Below, in pieces: positions 1 to 25,876 of a DNA stretch of 64,000 bases; position 1 is the stretch's first letter; each line of letters opens with the position of its first letter. The notes below the pieces were generated by a model. It saw only the letters and a program-made list of their open reading frames with translations. It had not been told where the DNA came from and made no database searches. Source of the stretch: Rebecca billardiae RCC1528. Its lineage: Eukaryota; Protista; Haptophyta. Where the stretch lies: NCBI GenBank assembly GCA_965240325.2, contig OZ251223.1, positions 3,658,001-3,722,000 of the forward strand, given 5' to 3'. The position numbers were made by a program, and so were the translations under genes.

Positions 1-500
1 GCGCGCGCCGTCGACGCATCGCGAGGCGAGCGCGCTGCGGACACGCGGCTGTGGGTGCCTGGCGCGCGTCGACCTGCCGATGCCGGTCGCGCACTGCGCA
101 TCTCTGCTGAGCCGTGGCACGTTGGCGGGTGGTCAGCGGCGGGCAGCGGCAGCCATCCCGGGCGCGAAACGGCAAGGCCAAGCGAGCAGAGCGAACGGCC
201 GTCACTCTGTACTGCAAGCGCCACGCGCACTCCGTGCATCACTGATCACTGATGGCGCGCGATACATGCAGACAGCACGTCTGTCACGATGGACGAGTGT
301 GGCTGCCGCCAATGGGGTCCTACTCGCAGTACCGTACGGGCGGCAGCTGACGGCACTCCCGCTGCCACGGCGCGCCCACGCCGACCGACCTCCTCCTCGG
401 GACCGGCGTCGCGGTCACGGCGGCGTGCAATGGTGCATTGCTACCCCGTAGTATGCTCATTGGTGTGGAAGCACAGATCGCGCCCCGAGCGTCACGCGCG

Positions 501-1901
501 TCACTCGGGATTCGAGTCGCGGCAGCGGGCCGGGCCGGCATCCGGGTCGACGGCGGCCGTGGGCACCGGGCGGGTGGCAAAGTCGGTCGGCGTGGCCATG
601 GTGCGCGCGCGCCTGCGCGCGTCGTGCGCCTCGTTCTGCATCACCGAGCCGTGCAGGATGTCGCAGTACTGCCACAGTGGCAGCGAGTCGAACGGCTGCT
701 CGATGCGCGAGCCGATGTCCTCGATCCCGAGCATGAAGAAGCTGAGCACGAGCGCGACCGGCGTCGTGCCCGCCGGCCCGACAATCGGGTAAAGGCACGC
801 GGGCAGCATGGTGCACCAGAGCAGCAGGAAGCGGGAGAGGTGGTGCGTGTACGGCGTGTAGATCGGCGTGCGCACGATCCGCTCGCACCCGCCCAGCACG
901 TGGCTCAGCGCGAGCAGCCGCTCGTCCAGCGTGGCGCACGTGATCCGGTCGACCACGCCGGAGTCACGCATGCGGCCAACGAGCGAGCCCAGCTCGTGCA
1001 GCACGTGCAGCGGCCGGCCGTTGGGCGGGCACTCGATGAGCTCGCGCACGAACTCCTCGCCCGCGTCCGCCTCGCCCAGCCCGTCCGCCCACAGCAGCCG
1101 CACCTCGTCCCTCAGCGCGCCGTCGATGTCCCTCCGCACCTCTGCGGCCGTGCGGCCCTCGTACACGATGTGCTGATTGCCGCCGTCGGGCGTCACCTGG
1201 TACTTGAGGGTGAGGGCGAAGGAGGAGAGCAGGCGGATGGCGCGCGCGCGCTCGCGGCGCAGCGCCGGCGTGTCTGGCGGGATCGACACGAGGAAGCGGC
1301 TCGACAGGTCGCGGCAGAGGTTGAGCTGCGCGCCCCACAGCTGGCGCGCCTCGACGTACCGGCCGTGGCACGACTGCATGCGGAAGGTGACGAGCAGGCC
1401 GAGCGCGAAGCCGGAGAGCGAGAAGGGCTCGGTGGGCAGCGTGACCATGTCCGGGTGGAGCAGCAGGTCCCAGCCCGGCTGCTCCACGTACTGCGCCTTC
1501 GGGTCCTGCCCGAACTTGACGTTGTGCCAGACGAGCGCCTGCGAGCACGCCGCGATCAGGACGAGGTCGGGCATCAGCAGCCGGCGGAGGGTCTGCGAGA
1601 CGAGCAGCCCGGGGCCCCAGAGGCTGAGGTGCCGCGAGGCGCGCTCGTGCACGGTCCACTCGCCGAAGCTGTAGTTCACGTCAATCGGCACGCCACGCCA
1701 GTAGCGGCCGATGACCCGGCTGAAGAAGGATTCGCCGTCCAGGCCGGCGCGGCCGATGAAGCGCGAGCCGTCCGCGTTCACCTTCGGGCGGCGCGCGAGA
1801 ACCACCTCGCGCGACACCTTCTGCGACAGCCCACGGTGCGCGACACCGCCGAGCGGCCGCCATGCCACCGCGCGCGCCGCCGACGAGCCCAGCAGGCGCA
1901 T
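501..1901 (-). CDS. Bestrophin-family (UPF0187/YneE/VCCN-like) anion channel
   Basis: Single long ORF with first ATG at 1901. Motifs LGLLVTFRxxxxxxRYxEARxLWG, GGCERIVRTPI..Y..HLSRFLLLW and GIEDIGSRIEQPF are typical of the family. Confidence 0.85.
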   Translation of the reverse strand: MRLLGSSAARAVAWRPLGGVAHRGLSQKVSREVVLARRPKVNADGSRFIGRAGLDGESFFSRVIGRYWRGVPIDVNYSFGEWTVHERASRHLSLWGPGLLVSQTLRRLLMPDLVLIAACSQALVWHNVKFGQDPKAQYVEQPGWDLLLHPDMVTLPTEPFSLSGFALGLLVTFRMQSCHGRYVEARQLWGAQLNLCRDLSSRFLVSIPPDTPALRRERARAIRLLSSFALTLKYQVTPDGGNQHIVYEGRTAAEVRRDIDGALRDEVRLLWADGLGEADAGEEFVRELIECPPNGRPLHVLHELGSLVGRMRDSGVVDRITCATLDERLLALSHVLGGCERIVRTPIYTPYTHHLSRFLLLWCTMLPACLYPIVGPAGTTPVALVLSFFMLGIEDIGSRIEQPFDSLPLWQYCDILHGSVMQNEAHDARRRARTMATPTDFATRPVPTAAVDPDAGPARCRDSNPE

Positions 1902-2316
1902 TCGTGAATGCGCGAGGCGCCGGCTTCTCCTGTCGCGCAATGGCGGCGGTCTAGGTCGCGGGAGGAATCGTCTGCTTGCCGATCAGCATCATCTTATTAG
2001 CTGGAGGCATCATCGACTGTCAAATCGTACAGTGTAGTCTGGACGAGGTGCATCAATAATCTAACCTTGGCTGACGACAACCGCCCGCCCGTTGCTGAGC
2101 CGCGTCTTGCCGTCTTGGGCCGTACGTAAACTGCGGGGGCCTGGCGGCCTTGTCCCCGTAGGGCTGGTTGAACGCAGCGCCGGCAGGCCCGTCGACTCTC
2201 GATGAAAGTGCGAAATAGACTGAGCCGTTCAGCGCTGGTAAGGAAGACTACCAGCAGTCACTGATCTGGTGAGCGGCGCCGCAGCGCCCGCCGACGCGCG
2301 CGGCGTAGCAGCGCAT

Positions 2317-2806
2317 GCATCGATGCAGCTGTCGCTGCGCCCAGCCTCGGACACGACGTGGTACGAGCGGATCGCGTTGGTGTGACATCAGTTGTGTTGT
2401 GTGGCAGCTCGGCTCTTGCCAGTGGAGACGCCGCGGCGCGGGTGGCGACTCGGCTGCGCGTGTTGATGACGATTCAGTGCGCGTTGGGAGTATGAATCTG
2501 CCAGCGGGTGGCTTATGCCTATGATGGTATGAGCGTCTCATGCGTGTGCACTCAGTGTGCGGCGTCGCCCATGAGGCTGTTCGTGCACGTTGAGGTGCGC
2601 GCCGCGGCGCGCGCGCGGCGCGGCAGCTGGCACGCACCGCGGAAGGCCCACCCGGGTGTGCGGGCGCGCGGCCAGCCGCGCAGCGCACGACCTGAACGCA
2701 TCGATGCAGCTGTCGCGCCGCGCCCGGCCTCGGACACGGCATGGTAGCTTACGAGCGGCTCGTGTACAGTCAATCGGTGTGACACTGTTGTGCTGTGAGG
2801 CACAGC
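2317..2806 (+). repeat. Diverged ~95-110 bp direct repeat pair (2317-2410 and 2698-2806)
   Basis: Shared blocks gcatcgatgcagctgtcgc, gcctcggacacg, tacgagcgg and ggtgtgaca..gttgtg occur in the same order. Confidence 0.6.
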
Positions 2807-3033
2807 GCATCGGGCGCCGGCTCGGAGATCGGTTCATCGCCGCGCACGTGTGTGCGAGCCGTGCCGGCGGCGTCGTCGAGCCACGTCGGCTGAGCGCCAT
2901 TCGGCAGTCGCGCCGAACGAGTGCACCCCACGCCCTTGGTTTGGGAGTATATAAATTCCCCTTTATAATAACGGGCTCCGGGTGATCAGACTGGCGGCCG
3001 AAGCCTCCAGCCCTACCCTGGCCAGCCCCCAAC

Positions 3034-4142
3034 CAAGGGAGTCAAGGGTGCCCGCGCCCCAGTGGCGCGCTCGGCGGATGTTGGGATACACCTTTTTGCC
3101 CGCGGCCCTGCGGCGGCGGCGGCGGTGGCGTGCTCCGCTGGCGGGGCGAGCGCACGGGGCACGGCGCTGCGGGCGCGGATGTGCCCGCGAAGCCGGCGCG
3201 TGCGGACGGGCTGTTGCGGGAGAGTATCAGGCGCCCTCCTGCGACGCGCGACTTGCGCCACGCCTCTTTCGCCTCGGCTCAGAGCAGCGCGCACGCACGC
3301 GCCGCCTCAAGGCCAGCCTTGCCGCGCCGCAGCCGACCGCGCGCGCGCCGTGCGCGGCGTGGTCGGGAAGGAACGGGCGCTGCTGCCGGGCGAGATGGCG
3401 ACATCATGGGCGCACGCCATGCCGCCCCGCGGCGCCGCGAAAGAGCACGAGAACGGATCCGCACAGCTGTTGACGAGTGCTGATTTCTTGCCGTGCCTGA
3501 AGCCAGACCTGAGCTCGAAGAAGATGATGAAAGAGCATCAGCGCGAGGAAAGCGTCGCACCCAGCACTTCTACATGACCACGCGGTGATGAACATTCATG
3601 TAAGAGTAGCCCGCGTGCCCGTCTGGCACTGTTCTGTGTCTCAATGATCGTCCCGACAACGGTCACGACCGCGAGGCAGTGCACACCATTTGTGACAAGT
3701 CGAAAAGGCGTGCAAACGGACCGACGACACTCTCGTCAAGGCGTGGCGGGGCGGCATGGCGTGCGCCTATGATGTCGCCATCTCGCCCGGCAGCAGCGCC
3801 CGTTCCTTCCCGACCACGCCGCGCACGGCGCGCGCGCGGTCGGCTGCGGCGCGGCAAGGCTGGCCTTGAGGCGGCGCGTGCGTGCGCGCTGCTCTGAGCC
3901 GAGGCGAAAGAGGCGTGGCGCAAGTCGCGCGTCGCAGGAGGGCGCCAGATGCTCTCCCGCAACAGCCCGTCCGCACGCGCCGGCTTCGCGGGCACATCCG
4001 CGCCCGCAGCGCCGTGCCCCGTGCGCTCGCCCCGCCAGCGGAGCACGCCACCGCCGCCGCCGCCGCAGGGCCGCGGGCAAAAAGGTGTATCCCAACATCC
4101 GCCGAGCGCGCCACTGGGGCGCGGGCACCCTTGACTCCCTTG
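3034..4142. mobile_element. Non-autonomous foldback/TIR DNA transposon with 397-bp TIRs and 7-bp TSD (P- or hAT-like termini)
   Basis: 3034-3430 is a near-perfect inverse of 3746-4142. Termini are CAAGG...CCTTG. CCCCAAC lies directly on both sides (3027-3033 and 4143-4149). Confidence 0.85.
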
Positions 4143-4341
4143 CCCCAACCAACCACCACCCTCACCCAACCTCAAACCACTGACCGATACACCAAGTGCC
4201 TGTCATAGAAAAATAAGCGTCAATAATCGCGGTTCGACCCTCATCATTTGTTCAGTGTAGCTGACTTCAACAGCTACTTTAGAATTCGTCTTAGGCATTA
4301 TAATCATTCGTAGTAAGCTGGTAGTGGCAGGTTCAGGTGCC

Positions 4342-6512
4342 ATGTCTGGCTGCGTGGGCTGCCTGCGTCTGCCGGGGGAGCAGCCGCTGGTCGAGGAGGG
4401 CCGCGTGCGCAGCGACAGCGCACGCATCGAGCAGCAGCAGCCGACGCAGCCTGGGCATTCGGCGCGCGGCTTGGGGTCCATCGACGTGACGGCTGCCATC
4501 TCCGCGGGCAAGGTGTACGCGTGGCGTGTCGTGAGCTCGCACGAGGTGGTGGCAGAGCACGGCAAGATCTTCCAGATCGAGAGGACGAAGGAGAAGGAGA
4601 CTGGTTCGAGCCTTGCGGACGCCTTCATCTTGGCGAGGGACCGCCTGACGGGGACGAACGACCCCTCCGACGAAGGCGCTGTCGACGACACGAAGTTGCG
4701 GAGCACCAAGACGGTCGGCGGCGGCCTGACCAAAGGCGAGGCACGAGAGCTCTTCGGCAAGTCGCACCCGGGTGCCGTGCTTGGCTGTTACGCCTTCATC
4801 TCTCACTCGTAAGCGCCGATGTCCCATGCGCGTCGCAAGCCATGCCTCGTCTCTCACCCGCACCCATCCCCTGTGCTGCTCGCCTCATGCGTGCGTCCTC
4901 ACGTGACATACATGCGTTGCGTCGTCGTCATCATCAGGTGGTCGGCGTCGCGGGCTCTGAAGACTCTCGCCATCAACTTTGCCTTCAATGGCACCGCTGC
5001 TCTCATAGCCGCACTGCTTGTGGCGCTGGTCGCCTTGGCGCTCATGTTGACATGGCGGGTGAAGCATGGTGCGATGCTCCCCCCACAGGCCTACCTCTTG
5101 GTCGCGGTGCCGCCACTCCTCGCGTACGTCTATGTCCTCCTACATGGGCAGAGGCTGCTACCATGGATCAGGCGCTTCGTCTTCCTCGAGTACGCCGGGC
5201 CCCTGCGCGCGCGATGCCTCGCGCGAGCCGCACGCGTGCAGATCGGTCGAGTAAACGATTTGCCTGCCTCCTCTCACGTCTGACTAGTGACTACTGACTT
5301 CTGTTTGCTGTCGCGCGCGCACACGTGCCTACCCGGGCCGATGCTGGCTATCGGTGTTGTTGCTGTGGCCCCACGCTGCCGCCCCGCCCCGCACTACAGC
5401 CGGCTCTGCGTGCACCAGGCCAACGATAGCCTCAAGCAGGCAGGTATTCAGACACTCGGCGACGTGGTTCTTGCGTCGCAAAACCTTCTCGTGCTGCTCT
5501 CCACTGACTACCTCGAGCGCTTGTGGTGAGTGCCGCACGAATGCGCGCTCGCGCGCGCGATGACGGATATGAGCACATGCCGCTAGTCCGCCAGCAGCCC
5601 GCCAGCAGGCGGTTCGCCCGTTCACGCGCGTTGAGCGCCGTGCCCCACAGGTGCATCTTTGAGCTCGCGACTTTCACCGCATCGCACGACGAGGACGCAA
5701 TCGTGGCTGTGCCGCTGTGGCTTCCGCCCATTCTGTTCGCGTTTTCGAGCGTCTTCGCTTCTTCTGGCATCGCATGGTACGTGTTCGGCCCCGTGACTCT
5801 CGCCTACGTCTCCTTGTGGTTGTGTTGGCTGGGGCCAGTGTGGGGTCAAGTCGCTGTCTGGACGACTGGATTTCTGATGCACGCAAGCTTGATATCGTAC
5901 GCGCTGCTCAAGAAGGTCTCGTACCATCTCGAGCTCGACGAGCGGCTCGCACACTTCTCGCTGGCTGATGCCAAGGTGACAGTGGAGTCAGACAGGGCGA
6001 TCGTCATGCACGAGATCACACAGCTGCATGGCTCCCCCGAAAACTTCGAAGACCTCGTGCGCAACAGGATGCGGCAGAAACTGCGCAAGGCTCTCGGGCC
6101 GCCTGGGCGCATGCTGTATTCTCATACAATGCTCATTGCCACGCCCATCGCGACCTGGGCACTCAAGGACGCCACCGCCGTCGAGGAACAGCAGGAATTG
6201 GAGATTGTGGGCTGCCGCGCCTCGGACGGGACCCCGTACGGACAGGTGGAGCGCACGCTGGCCGGCCTTTGGTTCTACGGCGCGATGGCCTTCATCTGCA
6301 TCCCCATTGCCTTCACTGTGTGCGGCTCTGTCGCAGAGCTCTTGCTGCGCAAGCACTACGAGGCGCCCAGCAAGCTGCGTTTCAGGGTGTGCTGGCTTTG
6401 CTGCGTGATGTCTTTTGCCATGACCTCTGGCTCCAGCTTCTTGCTCGTCTTATTGCTGCAACACCACGTCCTATTTCGAACTGGCCCATGTCACGCCGCA
6501 GCTGACAGATAA
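4342..6512 (+). CDS. Multi-pass membrane protein with TIR-like domain; join(4342..4808,4938..5189,5400..5525,5651..6512), ~568 aa
   Basis: Three GT-AG introns keep frame (1707 nt) and restore the motifs AFISHSW, FLDRLCVHQ and LLVLLSTDYLERLWCIFEL. Several hydrophobic segments are present. Confidence 0.75.
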
Positions 6513-12431: not shown

Positions 12432-12463
12432 GGCCGAAATCGCCCGGAGATTTTGCAAGCGTA

Positions 12464-13257
12464 TAGGGACCCACAAATTTAGTTGCCGGCTGCAGCAGGC
12501 ACGACTTTGTCTCAGCCCGCACGCCCGCTACGCGCCGACCCGGGCAGAGCCCATCCGCCCGCGCATGCACCAGGCCCAGCCGCGTCAGTACATACCCACC
12601 CGGCCGCGGCACCCGCGCTCTGTGCGCCACGGTGTCGATGCGCCCGGCAGTCGGTGCGCATGCACGAGCCAGCCGGCGGGCAGCTACGGGCTGGTTTTCG
12701 GCGTGGAGCGCGGTCGTGTGAGCTGCATTAATTCAGCTGACCCCCGGCTTTTGTGCATTCGGGAGTCGTGCTGCTACGGTGGGCGTGCCACGCGCCAACT
12801 CGACGCTGGCAAAATTAGGCGACGAAAGTGCACGCGCAGCCACACGCAGCCCATATTGATGCTCTCGGAGCAGGCTCGGGCATGCACTCGATCGGCTCTG
12901 GCTGACGGCAGCGCCAAGCTGGCGGCGCGGCGCGAGGGTGCATGCGTGGCGTGGGCGGAGCTACGTCGCACACGCACCGCGCGGCGCGCGGCTCAGCGCA
13001 CGGAGGCTGCCGACAGCCGGCGGCACGCAGGCAGGTCTGCTCGCCGCCAGTCGAGCTCGCCGGCCGCCGGGTACCAAACGTCAACCCAGGATGCACAGCC
13101 ACGCCTATTTGCGAGGACTCGAGCAATCGGGTCCGGGCGCACCTCATGTGCACGGCAGTGGAGTGGGCCAAGTACGCCCCTGGTATGGTGGCGCGCCGCT
13201 GCTTTGCTGCGCTGATATGGCGAACAATGTCGGGAGGCTTAAACTTGTGAGGGACTA
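12464..13257. repeat. Terminal direct repeat A, left copy (794 bp) with imperfect 18-bp inverted ends
   Basis: Matches 24869-25662 by eye and by identical six-frame translations. A partial third copy lies at 18969-19201. Confidence 0.92.
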
Positions 13258-13268
13258 AGTGAGCAGCC

Positions 13269-16200
13269 TCGGCTGAGGCCGTGAGCTGCCGTAGGCTGAT
13301 CTGACCCGACAAAAGTCGGCGCGCGAGCGCGCGCGCGCGCGGCGCGGCGCCGCCCCGCTGGCACGTGGGCTCGGTGTGCCTGGGCCGCGCCGAGTGCCCC
13401 GCACCCGGATCTCGCCCAGCTAGCTCGTCCTCGCCGCGCTCTGAGGCCCCCGTAGCAGTCGTAGCTGCTCGCCGCCGCCGCAGATCGTGAAGACCAGCTG
13501 CTGTCAGCTGCTCGCTCTGAGCCGGGACATGGGGCCGCGTGGAGGAGGCGCCGTGCGGCCGGGCGCGCGCGTGCGCGTCGAGCGGCCCCTGGGCGCACTG
13601 CTCACGCGTCGGCGCGCCCGCCCGGCGCGCGCATCATCGCTCAGTCGCGCCGCTCTGCTGAGCTAGCCGCCGCTGGTCGCAGCCGTCGGCTGAGGCCGTG
13701 AGCTGCCGTAGGCTGATCTGACCCGACAAAAGTCGGCGCGCGAGCGCGCGCGCGCGCGGCGCGGCGCCGCCCCGCTGGCACGTGGGCTCGGTGCGCCTGG
13801 GCCGCGCCGAGTGCCCCGCACCCCGATCTCGCCCAGCTAGCTCGTCCTCGCCGCGCTCTGAGGCCCCCGTAGCAGTCGTAGCTGCTCGCCGCCGCCGCAG
13901 ATCGTGAAGACCAGCTGCTGTCAGCTGCTCGCTCTGAGCCGGGACATGGGGCCGCGAGGAGGAGGCGCCGTGCGGCCGGGCGCGCGCGTGCGCGTCGAGC
14001 GGCCCCGGGGCGCACTGCTCACGCGTCGGCGTGCCCGCCCGGCGCGCGCATCATCGCTCAGTCGCGCCGCTCTGCTGAGCTAGCCGCCGCTGGTCGCAGC
14101 CGTCGGCTGAGGCCGTGAGCTGCCGTCAGCTGATCTGACCCGACAAAAGTCGGCGCGCGAGCGCGCGCGCGCGCGCGGCGCCGCGCCGCCCCGCTGGCAC
14201 GTGGGCTCGGTGTGCCTGGGCCACGCAGAGCACCCCGCACCCGGATCTCGCCCAGCTAGCTCGTCCTCGCCGCGCTCTGAGGCCCCCGTAGCAGTCGTAG
14301 CTGCTCGCCGCCGCCGCAGATCGTGAAGACCAGCTGCTGTCAGCTGCTCGCTCTGAGCCGGGACATGGGGCCGCGAGGAGGAGGCGCCGTGCGGCCGGGC
14401 GCGCGCGTGCGCGTCGAGCGGCCCCGGGGCGCACTGCTCACGCGTCGGCGTGCCCGCCCGGCGCGCGCATCATCGCTCAGTCGCGCCGCTCTGCTGAGCT
14501 AGCCGCCGCTGGTCGCAGCCGTCGGCTGAGGCCGTGAGCTGCCGTCAGCTGATCTGACCCGACAAAAGTCGGCGCGCGAGCGCGCGCGCGCGCGCGGCGC
14601 CGCGCCGCCCCGCTGGCACGTGGGCTCGGTGTGCCTGGGCCACGCAGAGCACCCCGCACCCGGATCTCGCCCAGCTAGCTCGTCCTCGCCGCGCTCTGAG
14701 GCCCCCGTAGCAGTCGTAGCTGCTCGCCGCCGCCGCAGATCGTGAAGACCAGCTGCTGTCAGCTGCTCGCTCTGAGCCGGGACATGGGGCCGCGTGGAGG
14801 AGGCGCCGTGCGGCCGGGCGCGCGCGTGCGCGTCGAGCGGCCCCGGGGCGCACTGCTCACGCGTCGGCGTGCCCGCCCGGCGCGCGCATCATCGCTCAGT
14901 CGCGCCGCTCTGCTGAGCTAGCCGCCGCTGGTCGCAGCCGTCGGCTGAGGCCGTGAGCTGCCGTCAGCTGATCTGACCCGACAAAAGTCGGCGCGCGAGC
15001 GCGCGCGCGCGGCGCGCCGCGCCACCTCGCTGGCACGTGGGCTCGGTGCGCCTGGGCCGCGCCGAGCACCCCGCACCCGGATCTCGCCCAGCTAGCTCGT
15101 CCTCGCCGCGCTCTGAGGCCCCCGTAGCAGTCGTAGCTGCTCGCCGCCGCCGCAGATCGTGAAGACCAGCTGCTGTCAGCTGCTCGCTCTGAGCCGGGAC
15201 ATGGGGCCGCGTGGAGGAGACGCCGTGCGGCCGGGCGCGCGCGTGCGCGTCGAGCGGCACCCGGGCGCACTGCTCACGTGTCGGCGCGCCCGCCCGGCGC
15301 GCGCATCATCGCTCAGTCGCGCCGCTCTGCTGAGCTAGCCGCCGCTGGTCGCAGCCGTCGGCTGAGGCCGTGAGCTGCCGTAAGCTGATCTGACCCGACA
15401 AAAGTCGGCGCGCGAGCGCGCGCGCGCGGCGCGCCGCGCCACCTCGCTGGCACGTGGGCTCGGTGCGCCTGGGCCGCGCCGAGCGTCCCGCACCCCGATC
15501 GCGCCCAGCCCGCGCGTCCTCGCCGCGCTCTGAGGTCCCCGTAGCAGTCGTAGCTGCTCGCCGCCGCCGCAGATCGTGAAGACCAGTTGCTGTCAGCTGC
15601 TCGCTCTGAGCCGGGACATGGGGCCGCGAGGAGGAGGCGCCGTGCGGCCGGGCGCGCGCGTGCGCGTCGAGCGGCCCCGGGGCGCACTGCTCACGCGTCG
15701 GCGTGCCCGCCCGGCGCGCGCATCATCGCTCAGTCGCGCCGCTCTGCTGAGCTAGCCGCCGCTGGTCGCAGCCGTCGGCTGAGGCCGTGAGCTGCCGTCA
15801 GCTGATCTGACCCGACAAAAGTCGGCGCGAGCGCGCGCGCGCGCGCGGCGCCGCGCCGCCCCGCTGGCACGTGGGCTCGGTGTGCCTGGGCCACGCAGAG
15901 CACCCCGCACCCGGATCTCGCCCAGCTAGCTCGTCCTCGCCGCGCTCTGAGGCCCCCGTAGCAGTCGTAGCTGCTCGCCGCCGCCGCAGATCGTGAAGAC
16001 CAGCTGCTGTCAGCTGCTCGCTCTGAGCCGGGACATGGGGCCGCGAGGAGGAGGCGCCGTGCGGCCGGGCGCGCGCGTGCGCGTCGAGCGGCCCCGGGGC
16101 GCACTGCTCACGCGTCGGCGTGCCCGCCCGGCGCGCGCATCATCGCTCAGTCGCGCCGCTCTGCTGAGCTAGCCGCCGCTGGTCGCAGCCGTCGGCTGAG

Positions 16201-17028
16201 GCCGTGAGCTGCCGTCAGCTGATCTGACCCGACAAAAGTCGGCGCGCGAGCGCGCGCGCGCGGCGCGCCGCGCCACCTCGCTGGCACGTGGGCTCGGTGC
16301 GCCTGGGCCGCGCCGAGCACCCCGCACCCGGATCTCGCCCAGCTAGCTCGTCCTCGCCGCGCTCTGAGGCCCCCGTAGCAGTCGTAGCTGCTCGCCGCCG
16401 CCGCAGATCGTGAAGACCAGCTGCTGTCAGCTGCTCGCTCTGAGCCGGGACATGGGGCCGCGTGGAGGAGACGCCGTGCGGCCGGGCGCGCGCGTGCGCG
16501 TCGAGCGGCACCCGGGCGCACTGCTCACGTGTCGGCGCGCCCGCCCGGCGCGCGCATCATCGCTCAGTCGCGCCGCTCTGCTGAGCTAGCCGCCGCTGGT
16601 CGCAGCCGTCGGCTGAGGCCGTGAGCTGCCGTAAGCTGATCTGACCCGACAAAAGTCGGCGCGCGAGCGCGCGCGCGCGGCGCGCCGCGCCACCTCGCTG
16701 GCACGTGGGCTCGGTGCGCCTGGGCCGCGCCGAGCGTCCCGCACCCCGATCGCGCCCAGCCCGCGCGTCCTCGCCGCGCTCTGAGGTCCCCGTAGCAGTC
16801 GTAGCTGCTCGCCGCCGCCGCAGATCGTGAAGACCAGTTGCTGTCAGCTGCTCGCTCTGAGCCGGGACATGGGGCCGCGTGGAGGAGGCGCCGTGCGGCC
16901 GGGCGCGCGCGCGCGCGTCGAGCGGCCCCGGGGCGCACTGCTCACGCGTCGGCGTGCCCGCCCGGCGCGCACATCATCGCTCAGTCGCGCCGCTCTGCTG
17001 AGCTAGCCGCCGCTCGTCGCAGCCGTCG
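13269..17028. repeat. Tandem array of 9 x 417-419 bp units inside the transposon (copy 1)
   Basis: cggctgaggccgtgagctg recurs at 13270, 13687, 14104, 14523, 14942, 15359, 15776, 16193 and 16610. The array ends at about 17028. Confidence 0.97.
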
Positions 17029-17144
17029 TGAGACGTGACGTTAGACGTAGAGTAAGCTATAGCCTATAGGCTGATATGATATGACTCGAGATCTACTATA
17101 CTGAGCAGCTAATAAACTATACCATCATTGTCCGACACTGCTCT

Positions 17145-18446
17145 TCAGCGCACGCGCTGCTCACCCTTGGTCTCGACGCAGTCCTGCAGCCGACGCCGAT
17201 AGGATTTGAACAGCGCCTGGATGAACTTCTTGTCGTTCCGTACCTCCTCGAACTTAGCCTTCACCACCTCCTCGAACTCCTTGAAGGTTGGCCGCTGCTT
17301 GCTCGGGTTGTCGGTGCACCACTTGTGCTTCCATGCGTTGAGAAGCTGCTCCACGCGCGCCCAGACATGCTCAATGAGCGACAAGTCGGCGCTGTTCGGC
17401 GGCCAGCTACGGCCCGGCTGACCCTCGGTCGACTTGGGGCCAAGGTGTCCCTCGGGGCCAAACCGCTCGTCGAGCCATTGGCGCACAGCCAGCGCCGTGT
17501 GGGGTGAGGCACTGTCCTGCTGGAAGATCATCTGGCTGATGAAGTTGCCGAAGAGCGCCTGGGCCTCCTTGTCCAGGAAAGGCAGCACGTCGTTCAGGTA
17601 CTCCTTCCAGCACACGCCACGGCACTGCTTGCCGCGACCATTCTCATGCGTGCGGCCGTGAGTGCCCGTGGCAAAATAGAGCGGCGTGATGCCGCGAGAG
17701 CAGGCGCCGGCGTAGCCATGGATCACGCAGTCACCTGCCTGGACCTGGTTCAGCTTGCGCTTGGGCTCGTCACGCAGCGTCCACGACATCACCGTGCTCC
17801 GGTTCGTGACGTCGAACTTGAAGTACTTCGAGTCGGTGAAGAACAGCCTGTCAACCATCGCCTTGACTCTCTGCAGCCACCGTGCGAACGCCACCCGCTT
17901 CTTCGCCTGCTGAGCCGTGATCTGCTTCCTCACCTTGAGCGGCTCCCAATCCATCTTCTTCCGCGCCGCGCGGCGTAGCGTCTCGTCGGAGACGTCGAGC
18001 GCGGACGCATCGAGCGATCCAGCACCGACGGCGCGGCACGCAGCCTTCCGCACACTCTGACCAGCCGGCCCGGCGCTGAGCTCGGACGTAAGCGCCGCCT
18101 GCGCCTTGGCACTGAGGCGTGGGCGTGGACCGCGCTTCGGCTTCCCGTCAGCATCGATGTGCCAGCCCTCCGTGTGCCAGTCCATGAACCACTTCTTCAT
18201 CGTCTTCTCGGTGACCTCGGCCGACCGCGCCGCCCTCTGGAAAGCTGAGGCCAACGGAGAGCCTTCATTGAGGCACAGCACGCACGCGCCGATCGCATGG
18301 TGAAACCTCTCCGCAGGGCCCAGGGCCTTCGGGTTGTAATCCAGAGCAATACACTCCCGCGATACCCGCCTGTTCGGAGCGTAGCCGACGCGGTGGGCGC
18401 CTTTGCGCCCGCGCCGATCTTTGGGCGCGGTCGGCGCGCGGCCCAT
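17145..18446 (-). CDS. IS630/Tc1/mariner-superfamily DDE transposase (433 aa), copy 1
   Basis: HTH-like N-terminus, GPRPRL (GRPR-like), VSDETLRR and KKRVAFA. Catalytic motifs FFTDSK, FQQDSASPH and WPPNSADLSLIEHVW. Intact and intronless. Confidence 0.93.
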   Translation of the reverse strand: MGRAPTAPKDRRGRKGAHRVGYAPNRRVSRECIALDYNPKALGPAERFHHAIGACVLCLNEGSPLASAFQRAARSAEVTEKTMKKWFMDWHTEGWHIDADGKPKRGPRPRLSAKAQAALTSELSAGPAGQSVRKAACRAVGAGSLDASALDVSDETLRRAARKKMDWEPLKVRKQITAQQAKKRVAFARWLQRVKAMVDRLFFTDSKYFKFDVTNRSTVMSWTLRDEPKRKLNQVQAGDCVIHGYAGACSRGITPLYFATGTHGRTHENGRGKQCRGVCWKEYLNDVLPFLDKEAQALFGNFISQMIFQQDSASPHTALAVRQWLDERFGPEGHLGPKSTEGQPGRSWPPNSADLSLIEHVWARVEQLLNAWKHKWCTDNPSKQRPTFKEFEEVVKAKFEEVRNDKKFIQALFKSYRRRLQDCVETKGEQRVR

Positions 18447-18768
18447 CAGCCGCCGCCGGCTGCTTGGCCACGACCGAAGATGAGTGCACGTTACGTCCCG
18501 AGCCGCCCAAAGTTGATCTTACAGCTGACGAAGCGGTGTGGCCTCTATTCGAACTCGTTCCGTCCATGGCGAGCGCCCCAGCGACGCAGCCGCCGCGTGC
18601 GCTGGGGCCGCACGCCCTCGCGGATGTGCGCTGGGCACGAGCTCGGCGCCACGGGTTGAGCTCGTCGAGCTATGACAAGCGGCGTGGCGCAAGTCCAACC
18701 CAGTGGAGGCCCCAACTGCCGGCCCCGCCGCCGCGCGGGAGCGTCCGATTAACCTCAGCTGCTCTGCG

Positions 18769-18968
18769 NNNNNNNNNNNNNNNNNNNNNNNNNNNNNNNN
18801 NNNNNNNNNNNNNNNNNNNNNNNNNNNNNNNNNNNNNNNNNNNNNNNNNNNNNNNNNNNNNNNNNNNNNNNNNNNNNNNNNNNNNNNNNNNNNNNNNNNN
18901 NNNNNNNNNNNNNNNNNNNNNNNNNNNNNNNNNNNNNNNNNNNNNNNNNNNNNNNNNNNNNNNNNNNN
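18769..18968. other. Assembly gap (200 N)
   Basis: Run of exactly 200 n characters. Confidence 0.99.
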
Positions 18969-19212
18969 ACGCAGGCAGGTCTGCTCGCCGCCAGTCGAGC
19001 TCGCCGGCCGCCGGGTACCAAACGTCAACCCAGGATGCACAGCCACGCCTATTTGCGAGGACTCGAGCAATCGGGTCCGGGCGCACCTCATGTGCACGGC
19101 AGTGGAGTGGGCCAAGTACGCCCCTGGTATGGTGGCGCGCCGCTGCTTTGCTGCGCTGATATGGCGAACAATGTCGGGAGGCTTAAACTTGTGAGGGACT
19201 AAGTGAGCAGCC

Positions 19213-22200
19213 TCGGCTGAGGCCGTGAGCTGCCGTAGGCTGATCTGACCCGACAAAAGTCGGCGCGCGAGCGCGCGCGCGCGCGGCGCGGCGCCGCCCC
19301 GCTGGCACGTGGGCTCGGTGTGCCTGGGCCGCGCCGAGTGCCCCGCACCCGGATCTCGCCCAGCTAGCTCGTCCTCGCCGCGCTCTGAGGCCCCCGTAGC
19401 AGTCGTAGCTGCTCGCCGCCGCCGCAGATCGTGAAGACCAGCTGCTGTCAGCTGCTCGCTCTGAGCCGGGACATGGGGCCGCGTGGAGGAGGCGCCGTGC
19501 GGCCGGGCGCGCGCGTGCGCGTCGAGCGGCCCCTGGGCGCACTGCTCACGCGTCGGCGCGCCCGCCCGGCGCGCGCATCATCGCTCAGTCGCGCCGCTCT
19601 GCTGAGCTAGCCGCCGCTGGTCGCAGCCGTCGGCTGAGGCCGTGAGCTGCCGTAGGCTGATCTGACCCGACAAAAGTCGGCGCGCGAGCGCGCGCGCGCG
19701 CGGCGCGGCGCCGCCCCGCTGGCACGTGGGCTCGGTGCGCCTGGGCCGCGCCGAGTGCCCCGCACCCCGATCTCGCCCAGCTAGCTCGTCCTCGCCGCGC
19801 TCTGAGGCCCCCGTAGCAGTCGTAGCTGCTCGCCGCCGCCGCAGATCGTGAAGACCAGCTGCTGTCAGCTGCTCGCTCTGAGCCGGGACATGGGGCCGCG
19901 AGGAGGAGGCGCCGTGCGGCCGGGCGCGCGCGTGCGCGTCGAGCGGCCCCGGGGCGCACTGCTCACGCGTCGGCGTGCCCGCCCGGCGCGCGCATCATCG
20001 CTCAGTCGCGCCGCTCTGCTGAGCTAGCCGCCGCTGGTCGCAGCCGTCGGCTGAGGCCGTGAGCTGCCGTCAGCTGATCTGACCCGACAAAAGTCGGCGC
20101 GCGAGCGCGCGCGCGCGCGCGGCGCCGCGCCGCCCCGCTGGCACGTGGGCTCGGTGTGCCTGGGCCACGCAGAGCACCCCGCACCCGGATCTCGCCCAGC
20201 TAGCTCGTCCTCGCCGCGCTCTGAGGCCCCCGTAGCAGTCGTAGCTGCTCGCCGCCGCCGCAGATCGTGAAGACCAGCTGCTGTCAGCTGCTCGCTCTGA
20301 GCCGGGACATGGGGCCGCGAGGAGGAGGCGCCGTGCGGCCGGGCGCGCGCGTGCGCGTCGAGCGGCCCCGGGGCGCACTGCTCACGCGTCGGCGTGCCCG
20401 CCCGGCGCGCGCATCATCGCTCAGTCGCGCCGCTCTGCTGAGCTAGCCGCCGCTGGTCGCAGCCGTCGGCTGAGGCCGTGAGCTGCCGTCAGCTGATCTG
20501 ACCCGACAAAAGTCGGCGCGCGAGCGCGCGCGCGCGCGCGGCGCCGCGCCGCCCCGCTGGCACGTGGGCTCGGTGTGCCTGGGCCACGCAGAGCACCCCG
20601 CACCCGGATCTCGCCCAGCTAGCTCGTCCTCGCCGCGCTCTGAGGCCCCCGTAGCAGTCGTAGCTGCTCGCCGCCGCCGCAGATCGTGAAGACCAGCTGC
20701 TGTCAGCTGCTCGCTCTGAGCCGGGACATGGGGCCGCGTGGAGGAGGCGCCGTGCGGCCGGGCGCGCGCGTGCGCGTCGAGCGGCCCCGGGGCGCACTGC
20801 TCACGCGTCGGCGTGCCCGCCCGGCGCGCGCATCATCGCTCAGTCGCGCCGCTCTGCTGAGCTAGCCGCCGCTGGTCGCAGCCGTCGGCTGAGGCCGTGA
20901 GCTGCCGTCAGCTGATCTGACCCGACAAAAGTCGGCGCGCGAGCGCGCGCGCGCGGCGCGCCGCGCCACCTCGCTGGCACGTGGGCTCGGTGCGCCTGGG
21001 CCGCGCCGAGCACCCCGCACCCGGATCTCGCCCAGCTAGCTCGTCCTCGCCGCGCTCTGAGGCCCCCGTAGCAGTCGTAGCTGCTCGCCGCCGCCGCAGA
21101 TCGTGAAGACCAGCTGCTGTCAGCTGCTCGCTCTGAGCCGGGACATGGGGCCGCGTGGAGGAGACGCCGTGCGGCCGGGCGCGCGCGTGCGCGTCGAGCG
21201 GCACCCGGGCGCACTGCTCACGTGTCGGCGCGCCCGCCCGGCGCGCGCATCATCGCTCAGTCGCGCCGCTCTGCTGAGCTAGCCGCCGCTGGTCGCAGCC
21301 GTCGGCTGAGGCCGTGAGCTGCCGTAAGCTGATCTGACCCGACAAAAGTCGGCGCGCGAGCGCGCGCGCGCGGCGCGCCGCGCCACCTCGCTGGCACGTG
21401 GGCTCGGTGCGCCTGGGCCGCGCCGAGCGTCCCGCACCCCGATCGCGCCCAGCCCGCGCGTCCTCGCCGCGCTCTGAGGTCCCCGTAGCAGTCGTAGCTG
21501 CTCGCCGCCGCCGCAGATCGTGAAGACCAGTTGCTGTCAGCTGCTCGCTCTGAGCCGGGACATGGGGCCGCGAGGAGGAGGCGCCGTGCGGCCGGGCGCG
21601 CGCGTGCGCGTCGAGCGGCCCCGGGGCGCACTGCTCACGCGTCGGCGTGCCCGCCCGGCGCGCGCATCATCGCTCAGTCGCGCCGCTCTGCTGAGCTAGC
21701 CGCCGCTGGTCGCAGCCGTCGGCTGAGGCCGTGAGCTGCCGTCAGCTGATCTGACCCGACAAAAGTCGGCGCGAGCGCGCGCGCGCGCGCGGCGCCGCGC
21801 CGCCCCGCTGGCACGTGGGCTCGGTGTGCCTGGGCCACGCAGAGCACCCCGCACCCGGATCTCGCCCAGCTAGCTCGTCCTCGCCGCGCTCTGAGGCCCC
21901 CGTAGCAGTCGTAGCTGCTCGCCGCCGCCGCAGATCGTGAAGACCAGCTGCTGTCAGCTGCTCGCTCTGAGCCGGGACATGGGGCCGCGAGGAGGAGGCG
22001 CCGTGCGGCCGGGCGCGCGCGTGCGCGTCGAGCGGCCCCGGGGCGCACTGCTCACGCGTCGGCGTGCCCGCCCGGCGCGCGCATCATCGCTCAGTCGCGC
22101 CGCTCTGCTGAGCTAGCCGCCGCTGGTCGCAGCCGTCGGCTGAGGCCGTGAGCTGCCGTCAGCTGATCTGACCCGACAAAAGTCGGCGCGCGAGCGCGCG

Positions 22201-22972
22201 CGCGCGGCGCGCCGCGCCACCTCGCTGGCACGTGGGCTCGGTGCGCCTGGGCCGCGCCGAGCACCCCGCACCCGGATCTCGCCCAGCTAGCTCGTCCTCG
22301 CCGCGCTCTGAGGCCCCCGTAGCAGTCGTAGCTGCTCGCCGCCGCCGCAGATCGTGAAGACCAGCTGCTGTCAGCTGCTCGCTCTGAGCCGGGACATGGG
22401 GCCGCGTGGAGGAGACGCCGTGCGGCCGGGCGCGCGCGTGCGCGTCGAGCGGCACCCGGGCGCACTGCTCACGTGTCGGCGCGCCCGCCCGGCGCGCGCA
22501 TCATCGCTCAGTCGCGCCGCTCTGCTGAGCTAGCCGCCGCTGGTCGCAGCCGTCGGCTGAGGCCGTGAGCTGCCGTAAGCTGATCTGACCCGACAAAAGT
22601 CGGCGCGCGAGCGCGCGCGCGCGGCGCGCCGCGCCACCTCGCTGGCACGTGGGCTCGGTGCGCCTGGGCCGCGCCGAGCGTCCCGCACCCCGATCGCGCC
22701 CAGCCCGCGCGTCCTCGCCGCGCTCTGAGGTCCCCGTAGCAGTCGTAGCTGCTCGCCGCCGCCGCAGATCGTGAAGACCAGTTGCTGTCAGCTGCTCGCT
22801 CTGAGCCGGGACATGGGGCCGCGTGGAGGAGGCGCCGTGCGGCCGGGCGCGCGCGCGCGCGTCGAGCGGCCCCGGGGCGCACTGCTCACGCGTCGGCGTG
22901 CCCGCCCGGCGCGCACATCATCGCTCAGTCGCGCCGCTCTGCTGAGCTAGCCGCCGCTCGTCGCAGCCGTCG
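19213..22972. repeat. Tandem array of 9 x 417-419 bp units (copy 2, same variant order as copy 1)
   Basis: Offset of 5944 from copy 1, with identical ORF translations in the same order. Confidence 0.95.
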
Positions 22973-23088
22973 TGAGACGTGACGTTAGACGTAGAGTAAG
23001 CTATAGCCTATAGGCTGATATGATATGACTCGAGATCTACTATACTGAGCAGCTAATAAACTATACCATCATTGTCCGACACTGCTCT

Positions 23089-24390
23089 TCAGCGCACGCG
23101 CTGCTCACCCTTGGTCTCGACGCAGTCCTGCAGCCGACGCCGATAGGATTTGAACAGCGCCTGGATGAACTTCTTGTCGTTCCGTACCTCCTCGAACTTA
23201 GCCTTCACCACCTCCTCGAACTCCTTGAAGGTTGGCCGCTGCTTGCTCGGGTTGTCGGTGCACCACTTGTGCTTCCATGCGTTGAGAAGCTGCTCCACGC
23301 GCGCCCAGACATGCTCAATGAGCGACAAGTCGGCGCTGTTCGGCGGCCAGCTACGGCCCGGCTGACCCTCGGTCGACTTGGGGCCAAGGTGTCCCTCGGG
23401 GCCAAACCGCTCGTCGAGCCATTGGCGCACAGCCAGCGCCGTGTGGGGTGAGGCACTGTCCTGCTGGAAGATCATCTGGCTGATGAAGTTGCCGAAGAGC
23501 GCCTGGGCCTCCTTGTCCAGGAAAGGCAGCACGTCGTTCAGGTACTCCTTCCAGCACACGCCACGGCACTGCTTGCCGCGACCATTCTCATGCGTGCGGC
23601 CGTGAGTGCCCGTGGCAAAATAGAGCGGCGTGATGCCGCGAGAGCAGGCGCCGGCGTAGCCATGGATCACGCAGTCACCTGCCTGGACCTGGTTCAGCTT
23701 GCGCTTGGGCTCGTCACGCAGCGTCCACGACATCACCGTGCTCCGGTTCGTGACGTCGAACTTGAAGTACTTCGAGTCGGTGAAGAACAGCCTGTCAACC
23801 ATCGCCTTGACTCTCTGCAGCCACCGTGCGAACGCCACCCGCTTCTTCGCCTGCTGAGCCGTGATCTGCTTCCTCACCTTGAGCGGCTCCCAATCCATCT
23901 TCTTCCGCGCCGCGCGGCGTAGCGTCTCGTCGGAGACGTCGAGCGCGGACGCATCGAGCGATCCAGCACCGACGGCGCGGCACGCAGCCTTCCGCACACT
24001 CTGACCAGCCGGCCCGGCGCTGAGCTCGGACGTAAGCGCCGCCTGCGCCTTGGCACTGAGGCGTGGGCGTGGACCGCGCTTCGGCTTCCCGTCAGCATCG
24101 ATGTGCCAGCCCTCCGTGTGCCAGTCCATGAACCACTTCTTCATCGTCTTCTCGGTGACCTCGGCCGACCGCGCCGCCCTCTGGAAAGCTGAGGCCAACG
24201 GAGAGCCTTCATTGAGGCACAGCACGCACGCGCCGATCGCATGGTGAAACCTCTCCGCAGGGCCCAGGGCCTTCGGGTTGTAATCCAGAGCAATACACTC
24301 CCGCGATACCCGCCTGTTCGGAGCGTAGCCGACGCGGTGGGCGCCTTTGCGCCCGCGCCGATCTTTGGGCGCGGTCGGCGCGCGGCCCAT
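23089..24390 (-). CDS. IS630/Tc1/mariner-superfamily DDE transposase (433 aa), copy 2 (possibly an assembly duplicate)
   Basis: Translation identical to 17145-18446. Confidence 0.9.
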   Translation of the reverse strand: MGRAPTAPKDRRGRKGAHRVGYAPNRRVSRECIALDYNPKALGPAERFHHAIGACVLCLNEGSPLASAFQRAARSAEVTEKTMKKWFMDWHTEGWHIDADGKPKRGPRPRLSAKAQAALTSELSAGPAGQSVRKAACRAVGAGSLDASALDVSDETLRRAARKKMDWEPLKVRKQITAQQAKKRVAFARWLQRVKAMVDRLFFTDSKYFKFDVTNRSTVMSWTLRDEPKRKLNQVQAGDCVIHGYAGACSRGITPLYFATGTHGRTHENGRGKQCRGVCWKEYLNDVLPFLDKEAQALFGNFISQMIFQQDSASPHTALAVRQWLDERFGPEGHLGPKSTEGQPGRSWPPNSADLSLIEHVWARVEQLLNAWKHKWCTDNPSKQRPTFKEFEEVVKAKFEEVRNDKKFIQALFKSYRRRLQDCVETKGEQRVR

Positions 24391-24868
24391 CAGCCGCCGC
24401 CGGCTGCTTGGCCACGACCGAAGATGAGTGCACGTTACGTCCCGAGCCGCCCAAAGTTGATCTTACAGCTGACGAAGCGGTGTGGCCTCTATTCGAACTC
24501 GTTCCGTCCATGGCGAGCGCCCCAGCGACGCAGCCGCCGCGTGCGCTGGGGCCGCACGCCCTCGCGGATGTGCGCTGGGCACGAGCTCGGCGCCACGGGT
24601 TGAGCTCGTCGAGCTATGACAAGCGGCGTGGCGCAAGTCCAACCCAGTGGAGGCCCCAACTGCCGGCCCCGCCGCCGCGCGGGAGCGTCCGATTAACCTC
24701 AGCTGCTCTGCGCAAGATGTGGGCTCCTGTGCCCCACCAACTCGCCGGAGGCGGACGACGCGCTGGGATCGCTGCACGGCGGGAATATCCCCGACCCATG
24801 TGGACCGACGCCGGCCTCGCTCGCCGTCGCCCTCGCCCTCGTTCCGACTTTTCTACTACCTGCTCACT

Positions 24869-25662
24869 TAGGGACCCACAAATTTAGTTGCCGGCTGCAG
24901 CAGGCACGACTTTGTCTCAGCCCGCACGCCCGCTACGCGCCGACCCGGGCAGAGCCCATCCGCCCGCGCATGCACCAGGCCCAGCCGCGTCAGTACATAC
25001 CCACCCGGCCGCGGCACCCGCGCTCTGTGCGCCACGGTGTCGATGCGCCCGGCAGTCGGTGCGCATGCACGAGCCAGCCGGCGGGCAGCTACGGGCTGGT
25101 TTTCGGCGTGGAGCGCGGTCGTGTGAGCTGCATTAATTCAGCTGACCCCCGGCTTTTGTGCATTCGGGAGTCGTGCTGCTACGGTGGGCGTGCCACGCGC
25201 CAACTCGACGCTGGCAAAATTAGGCGACGAAAGTGCACGCGCAGCCACACGCAGCCCATATTGATGCTCTCGGAGCAGGCTCGGGCATGCACTCGATCGG
25301 CTCTGGCTGACGGCAGCGCCAAGCTGGCGGCGCGGCGCGAGGGTGCATGCGTGGCGTGGGCGGAGCTACGTCGCACACGCACCGCGCGGCGCGCGGCTCA
25401 GCGCACGGAGGCTGCCGACAGCCGGCGGCACGCAGGCAGGTCTGCTCGCCGCCAGTCGAGCTCGCCGGCCGCCGGGTACCAAACGTCAACCCAGGATGCA
25501 CAGCCACGCCTATTTGCGAGGACTCGAGCAATCGGGTCCGGGCGCACCTCATGTGCACGGCAGTGGAGTGGGCCAAGTACGCCCCTGGTATGGTGGCGCG
25601 CCGCTGCTTTGCTGCGCTGATATGGCGAACAATGTCGGGAGGCTTAAACTTGTGAGGGACTA
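24869..25662. repeat. Terminal direct repeat A, right copy (794 bp)
   Basis: Begins TAGGGACCCACAAATTTA, ends TAAACTTGTGAGGGACTA and is followed by TA. Confidence 0.92.
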
Positions 25663-25876
25663 TAATCACGCCTTAACCAAGTGTGCACGTTAAATCATAG
25701 TACAGTTTATTCCTTTACGTTTTGAAAAGGCTTTCGACCGTGTCTTGGAGTGTCACGTGCTCACGGCCAGGAGTCACGACCGCGACCGCCATCGTCGCCA
25801 CGTTGCCCGGGCGGCCCTGGGCACACGCGATCGCACTCGTCGCGTGCACATGCGCGATCGACACGGCGCTGGCGAC

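Follow-up and report, generated by a model that had tools for sequence, protein, structure and literature searches.

A probable Tc1/mariner transposon built on long terminal direct repeats in the alga Rebecca billardiae

The closest described system to the element reported here is KolobokP, a group of DNA transposons found in seven animal phyla in which the transposase gene lies in an internal region (INT) held between a pair of long direct repeats at the termini (LTDRs), in the order LTDR-INT-LTDR (Kojima and Bao 2022, Mob DNA 13:24, PMC9587614). KolobokP LTDRs have imperfect terminal inverted repeats (TIRs) of their own, 11-18 bp long, and constrained lengths of ~450 or 660 bp. Solo LTDRs with target-site duplications (TSDs) occur together with arrays of the forms (LTDR-INT)n-LTDR and, with at most four INT copies, LTDR-(INT)n-LTDR, and INT-INT joints keep one copy of the terminal TATA. 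Its authors describe KolobokP as differing from all other DNA transposons, provide a precedent for a recombination/excision model and also discuss the 'translocatable unit' model of IS26 (PMC9587614). Here we analyse a 64,000-nucleotide stretch (the window, C3:3658001-3722000) of the haptophyte Rebecca billardiae RCC1528, whose assembly GCA_965240325.2 has 72 Mb in 41 contigs and is GC-rich (~68%). At positions 12462-25664 the window carries what is probably a composite-like transposon of the Tc1/mariner (ITm) superfamily, in which an INT composed of a satellite and a transposase gene, called B, stands between identical non-coding LTDRs of 794 bp, called A, and the whole moves together.

The original prediction, made from the letters of the window alone, had placed two identical A copies at this locus with TA bordering their outer ends. 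The two copies show no mismatch over 794 bp and their identity stops exactly at both borders. The mobile unit is bounded on the outside by the ends of A, and these, anchored at the termini, show inversion at 13 positions out of 18 (chance ~1e-4 for one such comparison), the same imperfect inversion that had been noticed at the outset. B begins with AGTGAGCAG and ends with CTGCTCACT, perfect inverted ends of 9 bp (chance ~4e-6). It consists of 5 bp at the left end, nine 417-bp satellite units and 1896 bp of unique sequence, 1302 of which are occupied by the transposase open reading frame (ORF), which codes for 433 amino acids on the minus strand; the intact DDE transposase, satellite and inverted ends ascribed to B are all present. 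Neither reverse transcriptase, gag nor tyrosine recombinase is found among the ORFs of the element, as anticipated; the ORFs of A and of the satellite have no Pfam match, and no homologue was found for the longest ORF of A or for those of the satellite. Copies of A or B ends resembling transposase sites were looked for inside the satellite and the unique part and rejected. The 40 bp that adjoin the insertion on its right (window 25664-25704) recur in public-run contigs with other sequence on both sides, so this stretch is itself repeated.

The same organisation recurs across the genome, where nine further regions were read and one more monomer (C1:2422054-2431806) was deduced from match coordinates. 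A has at least 41 matches, mostly 100% identical and found in same-orientation pairs; 23 copies of B's unique part are present at 99-100% identity, and their transposase ORFs, also 99-100% identical, are open in 23 of 23. Arrays with differing flanks occupy at least 11 sites. Besides the deduced monomer, A-B-A is found on C39, C35, C10, C33, C17 and C1 (at 4.10 Mb), while C30 has A-(B)3-A and C7 has A-(B)4-A. On C1 a run B-A-B-A-B-A-B-A-B-B-A is readable from a 200-N gap onwards, and a single A-A dimer with an A-TA-A joint lies in the same 120-kb region. All 12 insertions that were read completely have different flanks and the form TA|TA..TA|TA, the bars parting flank from element; every readable outer flank is TA, a dinucleotide whose frequency in the window is 0.021. 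tRNA genes at the insertion sites were considered and rejected.

A genome-wide pattern census gives the same picture from the side of B. Its right end leads into TA and the start of A in 16 of 22 cases and into TA and the start of another B in 6, and its left end is preceded by A in 15 of 21 cases and by B-TA in 6; none of these 43 ends is joined to anything but A or B. Every joint of B, to A or to another B, consists of one single TA. About 10 solo or fragmentary copies of A exist, at least two of them complete and flanked by TA on each side, as had been foreseen. With at least 11 arrays, TA at the outer flanks, no solo B and 23 intact near-identical ORFs, A-B-A is not the result of chance nesting. 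The proposal that it moves as one unit is in keeping with its recurrence at different TA-flanked sites and with B never occurring away from A; the opposite situation, B alone elsewhere and A-B-A unique to the window, was encountered in neither of its parts when A and B were searched genome-wide. One view has to be softened, namely that the inner ends are dead for want of a flanking TA. Every joint carries TA because A's own terminal dinucleotide is TA, and the B-TA-B joints, which arose at least three times in this genome (C7, C30, C1), together with the INT-TA-INT joint that arose once in the relative L053 (see below) and the one A-TA-A joint, suggest that the inner ends are occasionally used.

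The copies vary in their satellite, which has from 5 to 22 units per B. Unit counts are uniform inside tandem arrays (5,5,5,5 on C7; 7,7,7 on C30), and the elements of C39 and C33, though inserted at different sites, agree in their 6-unit satellite and in their B subfamily. Among the matches listed (150 of ~240), all satellite units lie within arrays, and the overall total equals the summed unit count of the arrays; existence of the satellite outside the element was rejected. Two B subfamilies are 9 events apart in 1896 bp, and A is identical across both. Private variants of A are common to both repeats of one element in the two cases known (4G>T on C17 and 649C>T on C33). The element is young and probably still active in the alga. 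The only sequencing sample found (three runs, as contigs), which may be the assembly's own, contains A together with B's unique part, including a B-TA-B joint.

Several observations accompany this survey. Three independent 2-bp TA insertions are found, two in unique B at ~72 and ~90 (C17; the C10, C30, C33 and C39 copies) and one in a solo A of C8 at position 334 (L030); one turns TATA into TATATA, one splits TA to give TTAA and one is at a site without TA. Slippage could account for them, or they could be footprints left by transposons. Two A-like copies of 83-84% identity (C11:554068-554812 and C3:716219-716936), which span only A positions 7-690, hint that the repeat has an older relative. 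On C35 (669270-669679 and 671367-671769) ~1.7 kb interrupts one A behind its position 405, and positions 399-405 stand on both sides of the break, which looks like a 7-bp duplication from another inserted element. The 120-kb region C1:2318313-2431806 contains the A-A dimer, the long mixed array and a further monomer; to the left of its 200-N gap, which falls within the satellite where the orientation inverts, is a minus-strand A-B array. The outer flanks of this C1 block are inverted copies of each other, identical over their first 1028 bp and 99.4% identical over 1574 bp; either the inverted duplication is genuine or the scaffolding is at fault.

The window locus is itself doubled (Table 1). 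Instead of the single B predicted between the outer A copies, the assembly has positions 1-5511 of B, a 200-N gap, positions 562-794 of A and a full B, each part 100% identical to its counterpart. The 5744 bp that end at the gap are identical to the 5744 bp that start after it, which leaves two readings, an unmerged contig overlap that was scaffolded or a dimer with 717 bp hidden in the gap. The locus is thus either a monomer A-B-A that the assembly gives twice, once on each side of the gap, or a genuine dimer A-B-A-B-A, the latter being plausible because gap-free multimers occur elsewhere in the genome. The predicted size of ~7255 bp holds for the monomer once the duplication is collapsed (7255 bp), but not for the locus as assembled. 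The first transposase ORF lies wholly before the gap, which falls in non-coding DNA 322 bp past its start codon; no reading frame crosses the gap and a 245-aa ORF listed across it is spurious. Two genome gaps were noticed inside elements of this kind.

Table 1. Parts of the element in the window (positions are those of the 64,000-nucleotide stretch)
Feature	Position	Strand	Remarks
TA flank, left outer end (putative TSD)	12462..12463		TA outside A
Left A (LTDR), 794 bp	12464..13257	+	begins TAGGGACC, ends GGGACTA
B copy 1 (INT), 5511 of 5667 bp	13258..18768	-	cut by gap; 100% identical to counterpart
Satellite in B copy 1	13263-17028		identical to that of copy 2
Transposase ORF in B copy 1, intact	17145-18446	-	equals ORF of B copy 2
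Assembly gap, 200 N	18769..18968		stands for 717 bp if dimer real (B 5512-5667 + A 1-561)
A end piece, 233 bp (A 562-794)	18969..19201	+	directly 3' of gap; 100% identity
B copy 2, complete, 5667 bp	19202..24868	-	9-bp inverted ends AGTGAGCAG / CTGCTCACT
Satellite in B copy 2	19207..22972		417-bp unit, 9.0 copies, 97% matches, GC 0.76
Transposase gene in B copy 2, 433 aa, single exon	23089..24390	-	D205 D311 E359, N-terminal helix-turn-helix pair
Right A (LTDR), 794 bp	24869..25662	+	identical to left A
TA flank, right outer end	25663..25664

Protein sequence analysis assigns the enzyme through its family. Taken alone, the query finds nothing in Pfam at E <= 0.01, phmmer gives no match in PDB and a word-based protein search returns only the query itself. 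An exhaustive HMMER search yielded 409 homologues, from which an alignment of the query and 52 relatives (53 sequences) was made. Pfam DDE_3 is matched by 49 of the aligned sequences and HTH_Tnp_Tc3_2 by 26. The family profile hits the catalytic domain of Sleeping Beauty (5cr4, 1.4e-39) and Mos1 (1e-14) and also the DNA-binding domain of Tc3 (1u78, 7.6e-7) and paired boxes. The AlphaFold2 (AF2) model built with the alignment has a pLDDT of 84.8, against only 41 for the single sequence, and its best Foldseek matches are full-length Mos1 transpososomes (E 3e-11), followed by Sleeping Beauty and SETMAR. Model helices at 44-93 and 113-162 form an N-terminal bipartite, paired-like helix-turn-helix (HTH). 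Residues D205, D311 and E359 are invariant or nearly so in the 53 sequences, with spacing D-105-D-47-E. Since family, profile and fold matches and the conserved acidic triad agree, the enzyme is a DDE transposase of the Tc1/mariner superfamily by profile and fold, and its initial assignment to the Tc1/IS630 type stands. Tc1 proper (DD34E) and mariner (DD34D) are ruled out by the spacing of 47 residues, which is 41-46 in four relatives of its clade (41-47 for the clade as a whole); to our knowledge 47 is none of the known spacings (34E, 34D, 37D, 39D and so on). The genome has other intact Tc1-like ORFs, one at C11:82759-84006 (37% identical over residues 20-430) and two at C29:738919-739698 and C20:1683511-1684290 (33% identical over residues 174-428).

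A quick tree groups the query with P0002, P0004, P0005 and P0072 (SH-aLRT 94). P0002 is 37% identical to the query, as is the C11 paralogue; the contigs of P0002, P0003 and P0072 are so short that no context is visible. In the metagenomes, four to five relatives of 29-34% identity have an unrelated, TIR-bounded module of 754-797 bp adjoining the transposase part, present as a direct repeat in three. In L053 (P0004, ENA metagenome) a flank ending in TA is followed by a module X of 796 bp, a part T of 2200 bp with the transposase, a TA joint, and then T, X and T; a second P0004 contig, L054, has T, X and T. In both, X begins with TAGGGGAGG and ends with CCACCCCTA, inverted at 18 of 24 positions. 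L055 (P0005, JGI) has identical 70-bp contig ends, implying that a 3217-bp unit is repeated in tandem; in it a 797-bp module bounded by TIRs (17/24) adjoins the transposase part, and L059 has a repeat-TA-INT joint of the L055 type. L060 reads flank, TA, an LTDR of ~775 bp (21/24), an INT of ~2 kb and the same LTDR again, and in L061 a 754-bp TIR module lies upstream of the transposase. The module TIRs of the relatives match at 17-21 of 24 positions, compared with one hit in total for mononucleotide shuffles of all 17 scanned sequences. The INT of the relatives is without inverted ends. Repeats of different families have no nucleotide or ORF similarity to each other, and a conserved repeat-encoded protein was rejected, the repeat ORFs from three families being unrelated. 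What the repeats of the families have in common is their length of 754-797 bp and their start, TAGG(G) in four of five and TA-TGG in L061. Recurring in such distant relatives, the layout is thus a trait of the lineage at ~30% protein identity rather than an accident in one genome. In the metagenome contig L079, 835-bp direct repeats (74-918 and 2510-3354, 89% identical) surround a 28%-identical transposase with no clear TA or TIR bounds; it was not counted and may be an older or different member.

The behaviour of these copies can be accommodated by the following scheme. The transposase would bind the two outermost LTDR ends, at the left of the left repeat and at the right of the right repeat, and the whole unit would be cut out and pasted into a TA, which would be duplicated. 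All 12 fully read insertions, like the relatives L053 and L060, have TA on both flanks, and the element ends are also TA, which would fit a duplication of 2 bp or a TATATA target; a repeat ending in TA..TA with a 2-bp TA duplication is the favoured parse. Solo LTDRs could come from LTDR-LTDR recombination or from transposition of one LTDR, and (LTDR-INT)n-LTDR multimers and uniform tandem B from unequal crossover, as proposed for KolobokP. Excision of an internal LTDR would produce the INT-TA-INT joint. Tc1 and Tc3 cleave two bases inside the element end; if the enzyme cut likewise and the end itself reads TA, self-complementary TA overhangs would stay on the two donor flanks and could ligate to one TA. 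Monomers mobilised from multimers made by crossover would have both LTDRs homogenised and share private variants, to which a one-repeat circle or gene conversion would be alternative routes.

Not all data sit easily with unit-wise transposition, and the following weigh against it. Identity of A across the B subfamilies is not predicted by plain unit-wise cut-and-paste (~3.8 events expected in 794 bp, P ~0.02). The single A-TA-A dimer needs an extra repair step if cuts are staggered as above, and the flanks also fit a TATATA target with 790-bp cores, the element's own ends reading TA. The query alone misses the Pfam threshold (DDE_3 E = 0.013). Contigs of the public sample lack the element's unique flank and yielded neither RNA evidence nor an empty site nor anything that bears on the window's gap, and no empty site was seen otherwise. 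The A identity is what would be expected if A and B had separate histories, as when a circular A-B with one repeat, a product of the transposase or of recombination between A copies, is integrated at a resident solo A or at full elements. Solo A would then spread first, with composites and multimers built in place, resembling the 'translocatable unit' model of IS26; TA-flanked solo A and frequent multimers are indeed present, and the TA flanks would come from solo A. We regard this as unlikely. A foreign circle entering a variant solo A would leave the variant in one repeat, but C17 and C33 have it in both; the shared satellite count and subfamily of C39 and C33 at different sites are expected for copies of one unit; and Tc1/mariner enzymes are not known to integrate circles in this way.

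The TATATA parse leads to another explanation, in which A, as a 790-bp core, and B are independent TA-targeting transposons that each prefer the TA flanking a resident module, such insertions making the arrays grow. Sleeping Beauty prefers AT-repeat targets, and strict TATATA would be an extreme form of this. The single TA at all four kinds of joint (A-TA-B, B-TA-A, B-TA-B and A-TA-A) and the perfect inverted ends of B, which adjoin it, speak for two transposons, and the A-TA-A dimer is explained without an extra step. We still hold this to be quite unlikely, as solo B is absent from all 43 ends, monomers with equal satellite counts are found at different sites and the INT of the relatives has no inverted ends; the identical counts in tandem B fit in-place duplication better than repeated insertions. 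It is highly improbable that an assembly artefact or a one-off nesting accounts for the window locus, despite its doubling around a 200-N gap and the second gap, on C1, at an inverted junction inside the satellite. The architecture is gap-free on 8 other contigs with unique flanks, A, B and a B-TA-B joint are in contigs of the public run (possibly the assembly's own sample), and unrelated metagenome assemblies have the same layout; as source of the architecture, artefact or one-off nesting is refuted by this recurrence. We therefore keep the composite-like transposon moving as a whole as the probable reading. A bolder and rather doubtful extension is that the long repeats are an adaptation reached independently by Kolobok and Tc1/mariner, giving a cut-and-paste enzyme a replicative cycle, in which multimers would form in place or via a TA-joined one-repeat circle and monomers would then be cut out of them. 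If so, copy number would rise without loss of the donor, the two repeats would stay identical and the conserved repeat length of ~0.8 kb would be a structural need of the cycle.

Canonical Tc1/mariner elements such as Sleeping Beauty, Mos1 and Tc3 share with this one a homologous DDE domain, a paired-like HTH, TA flanks and one intronless transposase gene. They differ in being 1.3-2.4 kb long and in having simple TIRs but lacking long direct repeats; in the element described here the termini themselves read TA and the spacing is D-105-D-47-E. Bacterial composites with direct IS copies, such as Tn9, and IS26 pseudo-compound transposons are alike in that two direct TIR-bounded modules mobilise an interior and that solo modules and tandem arrays are possible, but their flanking modules are insertion sequences (IS) encoding the transposase and the composites are opportunistic; here the modules are non-coding, the transposase is central and the layout is conserved across a clade at ~30% protein identity. 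Long terminal repeat (LTR) retrotransposons and TRIM arrays also have identical long direct repeats, solo repeats, tandem arrays sharing repeats and private variants in both repeats. Unlike in these, no reverse transcriptase, integrase, gag, PBS/PPT or TG..CA is present here, the termini are inverted and read TA..TA and the flank is TA instead of 4-6 bp.

The architecture itself had been taken as undescribed, but KolobokP has the same LTDR-INT-LTDR layout (PMC9587614). The likeness extends to TIR-bounded LTDRs (13/18 here), solo LTDRs, multimers, (INT)n up to 4, joints that keep one motif (TA here) and a repeat length constrained within the lineage (754-797 bp here). The enzyme of KolobokP is of the Kolobok DDD/E type, all matches here being to Tc1/mariner, and in KolobokP a His-Me finger (I-PpoI-like) nuclease gene lies downstream of the transposase. 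No such gene is found in B, where the transposase takes 1302 of the 1896 non-satellite bp, nor among the ORFs of the satellite and A, which have neither Pfam matches nor homologues. KolobokP also has TSDs of 3-5 bp and RR..YY termini, in contrast to the TA flank and TA..TA termini here, and animal hosts in place of an alga and uncultured microbes; the 417-bp satellite and the 9-bp inverted ends of INT belong to the present element, in which the half forms LTDR-INT or INT-LTDR were not seen.

A full-text literature search, with incomplete coverage of subscription journals and Repbase Reports, revealed no Tc1/mariner case of the LTDR layout. This lineage is the first of the Tc1/mariner superfamily found with KolobokP-like LTDRs, a prior description being possible. 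In annotation, such elements resemble LTR elements to structure-based finders and break assemblies. Tc1/mariner enzymes function in vitro without host factors. As the assembled genome of this alga has 23 copies that are intact and nearly identical, LTDR-type propagation becomes directly testable as to the ends used, circles, the origin of multimers and the fixed repeat length. A second, unrelated superfamily with the layout, multimers and one-motif joints of KolobokP would mean that long terminal direct repeats are a recurrent solution and not a curiosity.

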